Assembly: GCA_033442325.1 (NCBI GenBank)
Contig: JAWQFM010000006.1
Span: 604,673-668,672, forward strand
DNA: 64,000 nucleotides
DNA from: Salpingoeca rosetta
Lineage: Eukaryota; Protista; Choanoflagellata
Reading direction: 5' to 3'
Below the pieces are notes generated by a model. It saw only the letters and a list, made by a program, of their open reading frames with translations. It was not told the origin of the DNA and searched no databases. Positions 50,473 to 52,305 of this stretch are shown here, piece after piece (position 1 is the stretch's first letter; each line of letters opens with the position of its first letter). The translations under genes and the position numbers were made by a program.

Positions 50473-52305
50473 AATGGGGCTGCGGCCGTGGTGGAGAGCG
50501 GTCAGATTACAAGAGATGGGTAATCATGGAACAGTGGCGGTGGTCATGATGGCATGAACGGCGGCTGGCGGCTGGCAGGATGGCGCGGACGGCAAAACCC
50601 AATGGACGCACCCACCAAGCCCTCCCTACCCCCAGCCTCAACTGCAGGGCCAAGCCCACCACTTCTCCGAAACAACAGAGAATATTGTGGCCGTGCAAAC
50701 ACACGTGTGCACGCACACACCAATCACGCACCTCCAACCCACAGCGGGAACACCACCACCACCACAACTGTCCCAATCCACAACAACACCCCGCGCCCTT
50801 TCAACCAACTGTCCAACTCAACCTAAATACCCACCACCACCCCAAACTTCCCAGCCCTTCCAACCCACACCATCCTCGAGCTGCAACCCTCACCTCTCTC
50901 GCCCTCACAACCACTGCACACCATCACCCACCCGATCCTCCAAACACCCACATCCCCTGCTCCCCATTCCCACTCCCGCCAGACACGAAGCACGACCAAA
51001 GCTTGAAACGCACAGCAACGATGCGTGACAGCGCACCAGCCAAACACATGCTCGCCCCCCACCCCACAACCCAAGGATGGGCAATAGCTGGGCGCCCATA
51101 ACACATGCGAGCATGACACCAACGCGAGCGCCGTGCACATGGGCGTGCACAAAACAACGAAGGACAAATGGAAACCGACAAAGGTGTTGGAAAGAGGGCA
51201 CAGACTGTGGAAATGTGACGCCCTGGCCTTTGCCAGTACCCCAGCACGGGCAAACACCAAACCACCACGACCGACACCACCAGCAGAGGGTAGCGATGGC
51301 GGGTGGGAGGTGTTTGTGTGCACTGAGATGCACGCTGGGGAAGGCCATGAACAGGGCGCTGGCACAGACAACAACAGCAGCGTGCCAATGTGTTTGACTG
51401 CCTTTACAACGCGCGAGTGGTCAGACAGGAATCGCCCGCAGAGAACGCAATCAAGTGACATGAAGAGATGGAGACTCGACTGCAACAAACGCAAACACAA
51501 CACCAGCAGTGCAACACACACATGTGTGTGCACGGCGGCTCAGAGCAGGTGATGCACATGCTCGCAAGAACGCAGCAACCACCACACACATCCCCTATAA
51601 ACGGAAGCAAAGGGCGAGCGTGTGCCCAACAGTGGTGGGTGGCGGTGCAAGGCCGTGCCAGCAACGTGCGGTGGAAGAAGGGAGGGGTCAGACGCAGAGG
51701 AAGCGACGAAGAAGCGAGGGAGAGACAGCAAAGGAAAGCAGGGAACGGGACCGAGACAGGCGGGGTGCAACGCAATGTATGCGAAGCACACCTCAATGGG
51801 GGTTGAAGACCACGGGATGTGGGGCTCTCACACCAACCAGCACAATGCAGCACCGGTGGGAGAGGCGAGAAGAAGCAGGGAAGCCGAGCGTGAATGGCAG
51901 AGAAGGGAGGCTGTTCGTGCCAGGCCGTGCAAGAAAGCACAGCAAAGCACGCAGCGAGGACAGATGAAAGAAAGAAAGGGGGGGACAAATGTGTTGGGAC
52001 GAGAACAGAAGTTGCATCATGAAGATGCTGATGGCGGTGATGCCCAACAGCGGACGTGAAGCGCTGATGTGCACATGCACACGTGGCGCGACTGAACGGG
52101 CGAGAAAACCAAAAGCCCTGACAGGAGAAGCGACAAGAGAGATAGAGAGAGCAACGGAAGGAAGGTGCACTGGCTGCCATCTATACGCACGCACACATAC
52201 ACTGCAGCTGATCGCCAGCCGCAACCACAGACCACCGCCAATGATGGTCATTCTCGCCTTGGTGTCATCACCCCGCAATCTCCACCACAGCCAGTGGCAG
52301 CCGCG

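Follow-up and report, generated by a model that had tools for sequence, protein, structure and literature searches.

The minus strand of a 64,000-nucleotide (nt) stretch of the genome of the choanoflagellate Salpingoeca rosetta (GenBank assembly GCA_033442325.1, contig JAWQFM010000006.1, positions 604,673 to 668,672; hereafter the window, whose own numbering is used throughout) contains, within an intron of the gene for WDR36/Utp21, a hairpin of 61 bases (hairpin 1, 51454-51394) that is immediately followed by an ACA trinucleotide. Judging from the complementarity between this hairpin and the native U5 small nuclear RNA (snRNA) and, above all, from the context of the hairpin, hairpin 1 together with its ACA is probably a functional guide for the pseudouridylation of uridine 46 (U46) of U5. 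Hairpin 1 appears to be best explained as the pseudouridylation hairpin of a U85-like guide RNA that this choanoflagellate-type holozoan encodes in an intron. A more tentative extension of this interpretation, which we consider possible, is that the intron gives rise to a composite guide RNA of the U85 type, about 1.8 kb in size, in which the box C/D core lies ∼460 base pairs (bp) away from the pseudouridylation domain and the duplex that separates them is selected at the RNA level.

A putative guide hairpin and its predicted target in U5

Hairpin 1 has a large internal loop between a lower and an upper stem, as do the hairpins of H/ACA RNAs. The lower stem, which is read directly from the sequence and is paired in every fold, joins UUGAUUGC (51454-51447) with GCAGUCAA (51401-51394) through 8 bp, seven Watson-Crick and one U.G, and matches base for base the stem that had been proposed in an earlier, sequence-only reading of this DNA. 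The internal loop is of the 7+7 type (51446-51440 opposite 51408-51402), and its strands, GUUCUCU on the 5' side (51440-51446) and U-GUAAAG on the 3' side (51402-51408), form the putative pocket, both halves of which are present where that reading had located them. The GC-rich upper stem that it had described (51409-51439, with the terminal loop) is predicted by RNAfold as GCG.GCGA/UCGC.CGU, that is, 7 bp with two 1-nt bulges, and is capped by a 15-nt loop. The ACA at 51393-51391 abuts the lower stem and is part of an ACACA sequence (51389-51393), in which a second ACA, at 51391-51389, overlaps the first; this element occupies the place of the H box and is not ANANNA, in agreement with the earlier remark that no canonical ANANNA box follows the hairpin. 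The ACA is located 14 nt from G51407, the distance to the pocket top that had been indicated; counted from U51408, which comes directly after the predicted upper stem, the distance is 15 nt. Accordingly, the 14-15 nt spacing rule of H/ACA RNAs invoked in that reading holds for hairpin 1, and the box lies on the 3' side of the pocket top, where the target position would be, within the 14-16 nt expected of such guides. The pairing probability of the hairpin 1 stems is 0.83-1.0 in a folding context of 256 nt; in contexts of 600-1800 nt (up to 1821 nt), it is 0.57-0.70 for the lower stem and 0.71-0.76 for the upper stem. The 91-nt region that contains hairpin 1 is single-copy in the genome, and its 3' hairpin half has no exact match among the metagenome contigs that were scanned.

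The 55.4-Mb eukaryotic assembly encompasses two almost identical native U5 genes that reside on two other contigs (L002 and L003, positions 1501-1651 in each). With 33 bits, they score under the Rfam cut-off of 40, and were accepted as U5 because they contain the invariant GCCUUUUAC loop and the AUUUUUGG Sm site with a hairpin on its 3' side, and because an upstream element is conserved in both copies. Loop 1 in both genes reads CGCCUUUUAC-UA-GAGACUG. The target deduced in the sequence-only reading from the pocket was UUUUAC-[U N]-GAGA(AC), and both native U5 genes carry UUUUAC-UA-GAGAC; at the position where a C instead of a U had been named as the finding that would speak against the proposal, both genes have a U. 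The GAGA half of this loop is species-specific and differs from its human counterpart; it had been deduced from the pocket when the native U5 genes were not yet identified.

In the predicted complex, G51407-G51402 pair with C45-U40 of U5 through five Watson-Crick pairs and one G.U, and C51441-U51444, the UCUC of the 5' pocket strand, pair with G48-A51, whereby U46 and A47 stay free. The resulting bipartite duplex of 6 + 4 = 10 bp, with a single G.U, is the same for both native U5 genes and, given a closing pair between U51440 and U51408, surpasses the experimentally determined guide-substrate minimum of 8 bp (PMC6049503). The U.U closing pair is required because U46 and A47 must be the unpaired dinucleotide; considering the published flexibility of guide pockets (PMC6049503, PMC8763049), this geometry is tolerable, though not ideal.

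With the hairpin held fixed, U46 of U5 is the best pocket partner among 1240 uridines of U1, U2, U4, U5, U6, 5.8S rRNA and the readable part (all but 583 nt) of the large subunit (LSU) rRNA, which was located via the 5.8S gene; 18S rRNA is not part of this set. The genome was also scanned for a stronger U46 guide elsewhere, with a perfect pocket (UCUC, then GUAAAAGG, then ACA). The pattern has one match, which forms no hairpin and was rejected, and the reversed-pattern controls yield the same number.

The 5.8S gene itself has fourteen matches in the assembly, many of these within a few kb to ∼30 kb of contig ends (e.g. C8:2017771-2023205), which suggests subtelomeric ribosomal DNA units; the LSU rRNA is 4372 nt long and contains large insertions. 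About 300 nt upstream of the U5 gene on L003, there is a sub-threshold match to the Rfam SCARNA2 model (1000-1206, minus strand; 34.8 bits versus the required 48, E = 7e-6) that may be either low-complexity noise or a real guide RNA gene.

The box C/D core and the giant intronic hairpin

Hairpin 1 is embedded in a far larger predicted structure. The minus strand between 52300 and 50480 folds into a single rod, a giant sense-strand hairpin (50484-52292) in which the 5' arm, from 52292 to 51536, runs co-linear with the 3' arm, from 50484 to 51130, such that 469 pairs enclose hairpin 1; the giant hairpin comprises 458 long-range pairs and accommodates hairpin 1 and a second hairpin (hairpin 2, described below) in an apex of ∼400 nt. 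The folding energy of -856.8 kcal/mol compares with a mean of -737.2 kcal/mol for arm-wise shuffles (standard deviation 9.4, z = -12.8) and with -661.1 kcal/mol for the antisense strand, a difference of about 196 kcal/mol in favor of the sense strand, and the modeled fold is thus both giant and strand-specific. The long-range pairs include 90 G.U pairs compared with only 2 A.C oppositions in small symmetric loops, an asymmetry that suggests that the pairing is maintained in the RNA transcribed from this strand, with mutational bias as another possible cause. A search for DNA inverted repeats by Watson-Crick complementarity detects low-complexity pairs only; given that the giant hairpin is invisible without the G.U pairs, it appears to be a structure of the RNA. 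A foldback transposon was considered as well and ruled out because the whole 1821-nt element is single-copy in the genome.

The base of the rod carries the hallmarks of a box C/D RNA. The terminal stem consists of 14 + 4 bp, the first part perfect (52292-52279 with 50497-50484) and the second one (GCGG, 52276-52273, with 50501-50498) flush with the CUGA of box D (50505-50502). Box C, GUGAUGA (52265-52271), comes after the GCGG stem and a 3-nt bulge (52272-52270), three nucleotides past the terminal stem, which is the kink-turn register; as modeled, the rod has a canonical box C/D kink-turn at its foot. The distance between box C and box D is ∼1.77 kb, and the core formed by these boxes encloses the hairpin-ACA units of the apex, the arrangement that defines composite guides of the U85 type. 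The ten nucleotides upstream of box D (50516-50507; with the box, 50502-50516) pair with U42-A51 of U5 at nine of the 10 positions, and G50510, the fifth nucleotide of this putative guide, faces C45, the neighbor of the nucleotide predicted to be selected by hairpin 1. There is no other D-type guide for any U5 position within the intron. A weak Rfam snoU89 match (52144-52275, minus strand; 13.7 bits, E = 0.56) extends into the region of box C and probably represents noise.

A second hairpin in the apex

The sequence-only reading had viewed hairpin 1 as a possible single-hairpin ACA module, which is probably not the best description because a larger hairpin with an ACA of its own follows. Hairpin 2 (51359-51218, ∼142 nt) is closed by the stem 51359-51352/51225-51218 and is followed by C-ACA, with the ACA at 51216-51214 (the complete unit spans 51214-51359). 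The 256-nt domain that consists of the two hairpins is more stable than expected (z = -4.58), an excess that is driven by hairpin 2. The 34-nt hinge between the hairpins contains a small hairpin and, in place of ANANNA, the sequence ACACAU, so that, in the model, the arrangement looks like a hairpin-hinge-hairpin domain of the H/ACA type with a degenerate H box. The full hairpin-hinge-hairpin-tail layout with an ANANNA box is not found here, though hairpin 2 and its ACA exist.

The 3' pocket strand of hairpin 2, AAAGGC (51231-51226), is complementary, by hand reading, to G37-U42 of U5, and the ACA is 15 nt from this strand, which would place U43 in the pocket. However, the 5' strand offers only ∼1 bp to U5, and for this reason hairpin 2 is not a credible U43 guide as it stands; a purpose-written scanner with fixed criteria found a relaxed solution for U42 only. 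Of the original interpretation of hairpin 1 as a U46 guide, the predicted target and the spacing stand, and the single-hairpin label probably does not.

Host gene and expression

The host intron is 2187 nt long (50244-52430, minus strand, GT..AG), and its splice joint, 50243/52431, is observed in 4 RNA sequencing runs. The flanking minus-strand reading frames, searched piecewise against Pfam, contain PF25171 and PF04192, which identifies the host gene as WDR36/Utp21, a ribosome-biogenesis gene. Such genes are a typical kind of host for small nucleolar RNAs (snoRNAs). Two reading frames that overlap hairpin 1, of 258 and 236 amino acids, were considered as coding sequences and rejected because the region is pyrimidine-rich and has few stop codons; neither frame has a Pfam match.

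A sense-strand RNA derived from this intron accumulates. In the two stranded runs that were analyzed as raw reads, every intron read is in the sense orientation. In run X20, the intron depth is ∼5-17, compared with ∼10-24 for the exons and 0.3 for the neighboring 236-nt intron. The ratio of intron to exon depth is ∼0.13 in run X10 (14 versus 110) and ∼0.5-1 in X20, and such wide variation between libraries suggests a molecule separate from the mRNA. In a 2011 run from a different study, a 159-nt RNA contig (51344-51502) spans the whole of hairpin 1 and, like another contig (51617-52105), reaches about two thirds of the exon depth. Both ACA boxes are crossed by reads and contigs, and the G-rich segment 50774-51041 has low coverage in all runs. 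The libraries probably exclude small RNAs, and the size and the ends proposed for the mature RNA are an inference. A wetland metatranscriptome (X16) contains 5% of the sequence words of the intron.

Several features of the RNA data touch on the locus in other ways. The strain used for RNA sequencing differs from the assembly by nine fixed differences within the intron (50574-52169), all of them transitions, and none falls within the segment that includes both hairpins (51034-51515), where ∼2 would be expected; with respect to the predicted fold, three of the nine keep a pair, two break one and four are in unpaired positions, which is uninformative as a test of covariation. Some RNA reads in the opposite orientation join two 18-nt GGT/ACC-rich patches (50748-50765 and 52696-52713) with flanks that are unrelated on both sides, and most likely represent a transcript of another locus mapped here via low-complexity similarity. 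Between 49937 and 50200, spliced reads and a contig contain 40 extra letters that are not placed on the stretch; these may stem from a micro-exon in the next intron downstream of the giant one, or the assembly may differ there from the sequenced strain.

Chance expectation and alternative explanations

The probability of the U46 module arising by chance was estimated with the scanner, for which a lenient module was defined by a lower stem of at least 7 bp, target pairing of at least 5 + 4 bp and a box spacing of 14-16 nt. Lenient U46 modules occur in 173 of 60 000 dinucleotide shuffles of the intron (0.29%) and modules of the observed quality in two of the 60 000 (0.003%); the fair p-value is between these two figures because the observed-quality thresholds were set post hoc. 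In the real window (128 kb, counting both strands), a search against 170 snRNA uridines yields 58 lenient modules, and exactly one of the observed quality, namely, hairpin 1 on U46. Two further estimates temper this result, namely, the lenient rate of ∼0.3 chance modules per target site per 64-kb window and, scaled to the genome, an expectation of ∼1.7 (observed quality) to ∼150 (lenient) chance U46 modules. Hence the module, although moderately better than chance as a guide for U46, is not significant genome-wide and proves nothing by itself, and the argument must be carried by the context. Should the C/D core be genuine, the probability that the same RNA holds a U46 pocket by coincidence is roughly 0.003% to 0.3%; should it not be, hairpin 1 is one of many chance modules.

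Apart from these expectations, a number of observations weigh against hairpin 1 being a U46 guide within a U85-like RNA. The hairpin is not exceptionally stable (z = -1.57, with 15 of 200 shuffles equally stable), and the 150-nt tile that contains it is at z = 0.0. Three intra-pocket pairs are predicted within the hairpin, in the full-length fold the ACA is partly taken into a 4-bp extension of the stem, and the pocket top is irregular, since U51440 and U51408 have to act as a U.U closing 'pair', after which comes a G.U. An ANANNA H box is absent downstream of hairpin 1, the 34-nt hinge to hairpin 2 included, and the 15-nt terminal loop has no UGAG Cajal body (CAB) box; within the searched segment 51100-51560, UGAG occurs once, at 51542, in the part of the 5' arm that borders the apex (51131-51536). 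The CAB motif (ugAG) may be confined to animals. At the gathering score, Rfam has no match in the whole window, and at E ≤ 10, searched on the intron and the apex, it leaves hairpin 1 uncovered, including by the U85, U89 and ACA57 models, with only noise-level microRNA, CrcZ and snoU89 matches. The D guide is interrupted by a U.U mismatch opposite U46, beside its own predicted target C45, and with G.U pairs permitted a guide of this kind turns up in 0.44% of the shuffled introns, so that by itself it is weak. In the RNA data, read-end pile-ups are absent, also at hairpin 1, and X20 covers the intron tail (50244-50371) outside the giant hairpin as well, so that the RNA may be a retained intron or a lariat. 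Finally, the runner-up target among the 1240 uridines, LSU U1846, is nearly equal to U46, with 10 bp and two G.U.

Several of these observations fit one alternative, a chance resemblance, in which hairpin 1 would be just one of the branches at the apex of a giant hairpin with a different role, possibly the compaction of an unusually long intron to bring its splice sites close, stabilization of the excised intron or action as a long double-stranded RNA. We regard this as rather unlikely, and the evidence is divided. The giant hairpin, when folded, cuts the effective length of the intron from 2187 to ∼370 nt, near the size of the neighboring introns; the frequency of lenient modules in the shuffled introns, their ∼150 expected occurrences genome-wide and the 58 found in the window against the snRNA uridines, the unexceptional z-score of hairpin 1, its lack of an H box, a CAB box and an Rfam match, and the number of intra-loop pairs, which is at the chance level, all fit coincidence. 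Against it stand the two shuffles out of 60 000 that attain the observed quality and the fact that the best of the 1240 uridines for the pocket adjoins the very nucleotide chosen by the D guide of the same RNA. Moreover, a canonical C/D kink-turn is needless for a mere splicing 'zipper', and C45 and U46 are precisely the pair of sites assigned to U85 (PMC7960923). Even if the U46 match is coincidental, a giant, strand-specific hairpin with a canonical C/D clamp still needs explaining.

That hairpin 1 is a real guide hairpin of the H/ACA type that serves a substrate other than U5, either LSU U1846 or a site in 18S rRNA, seems improbable. The LSU duplex starts from the base of the upper stem, has the 15-nt spacing and dispenses with the U.U closing pair, and 18S rRNA along with the 583 nt of the LSU lies outside the set of uridines that were compared. 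However, compared with the eukaryotic LSU model, U1846 falls within an insertion specific to this species, outside the conserved core, and needs more wobble pairs, and the co-located D guide points to U5. The least probable is a retained or slowly spliced intron or a small-RNA-precursor hairpin devoid of any guide function, for, although the coverage by X20 of the tail beyond the giant hairpin, the lack of pile-ups at RNA ends and the resemblance of the long imperfect duplex to hairpin-RNA loci would be accounted for, the difference between the intron/exon ratios of X10 and X20 suggests a molecule apart from the mRNA, and such a reading would explain neither the canonical C/D core nor the two guides directed at U5.

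A possible mechanism and its implications

If hairpin 1 is, as we propose, a U46 guide within a U85-like RNA, the intron of the WDR36/Utp21 pre-mRNA would fold into a 1.8-kb rod, the base of which would be capped, at the canonical kink-turn, by the box C/D proteins, and the apical hairpin-ACA domain would be bound by dyskerin/Cbf5 along with Nop10, Nhp2 and Gar1. Loop 1 of U5 would then pair with the strands of the internal loop, GUAAAG with U40-C45 and UCUC with G48-A51, leaving U46 and A47 unpaired at the base of the upper stem, ∼14 nt from the ACA, where Cbf5 would isomerize U46. The D-box guide of the same RNA would direct the 2'-O-methylation of the neighboring C45.

Loop 1 of U5 holds the exons during splicing, and its modifications are conserved from flies to humans. 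To our knowledge, guides for these modifications are known almost only in animals. If the present interpretation is correct, the composite U85 design, in which one RNA serves the adjacent C45 and U46, predates the origin of animals. It would also follow that the cores of guide ribonucleoproteins (RNPs) can be built onto a rod-like intron RNA of kilobase scale, which stretches the size range of the class, and the RNA would exceed all known modification guide RNAs in size by a wide margin. In addition, the locus, being single-copy, would be a genetically tractable one for asking what the modifications of the U5 loop do.

Comparison with known guide RNAs

The closest counterpart among the known guides is U85/SCARNA10, a composite C/D-H/ACA small Cajal body-specific RNA (scaRNA) (PMC4041459), for which the two assigned sites in mammals are Cm45 and the pseudouridine at position 46 (Psi46) of U5 (PMC7960923); the fly U85 likewise guides two modifications (PMC3884663). 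As in U85, a box C/D core surrounds a two-hairpin domain of the H/ACA type, with the elements here arranged in the order box C, hairpin 1 with the U46 pocket, ACA, hairpin 2, ACA, guide, box D. The predicted substrate pair, C45 for the D guide and U46 for the H/ACA pocket, is also the same, by complementarity alone in our case, and both RNAs are intron-encoded. The differences are substantial as well. The span is ∼1.8 kb compared with ∼330 nt in U85, with ∼460 bp of a G.U-rich duplex between the C/D core and the H/ACA-type domain. An ANANNA H box is missing, the loop of hairpin 1 lacks the ugAG CAB box, the D guide is mismatched (U.U) at U46, and the second hairpin shows half a pocket match only. 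The Rfam snoU85 model has no match here, and neither the U85-like size of ∼300-350 nt nor detectable homology to U85 is found.

U89/SCARNA12 is an H/ACA scaRNA, the assigned target of which in human is also Psi46 of U5. It resembles the module described here in having an H/ACA pocket directed at the same uridine of loop 1, but is a free-standing two-hairpin H/ACA RNA, and the only snoU89 match in the intron is the non-significant one of 13.7 bits, ∼700 nt from hairpin 1. With the canonical H/ACA snoRNAs, the shared features are a ∼61-nt hairpin with a bipartite pocket and the box at 14-15 nt, a 10-bp duplex that is longer than the 8-bp minimum (PMC6049503), and a second hairpin that is then followed by an ACA. 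Unlike those RNAs, the domain described here has a 34-nt hinge with a small hairpin and ACACAU, a second hairpin of ∼142 nt, and two ACA boxes neither of which is at a demonstrated 3' end.

The single-hairpin H/ACA-like RNAs of trypanosomatids and Euglena and the single-hairpin H/ACA sRNAs of archaea demonstrate that one hairpin with a 3' box can suffice. The trypanosomatid guides are, however, free small RNAs with an AGA box, whereas here hairpin 1 is followed by a second hairpin. On the scale of kilobases, the parallel is with the mammalian sno-lncRNAs and SLERT, long intron-derived RNAs that are stabilized by snoRNPs, with complete snoRNAs at their ends. The intron RNA described here similarly accumulates well above the neighboring intron, but a single C/D core would clamp both of its ends, with the H/ACA-type domain at the apex. 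The literature that we searched contains no report that links choanoflagellates to scaRNAs and no description of such a giant guide RNA. Hairpin 1, if real, would be a new member of a familiar class, and its setting, at the apex of a kilobase-long rod clamped by a C/D core, would be a new variant of U85.

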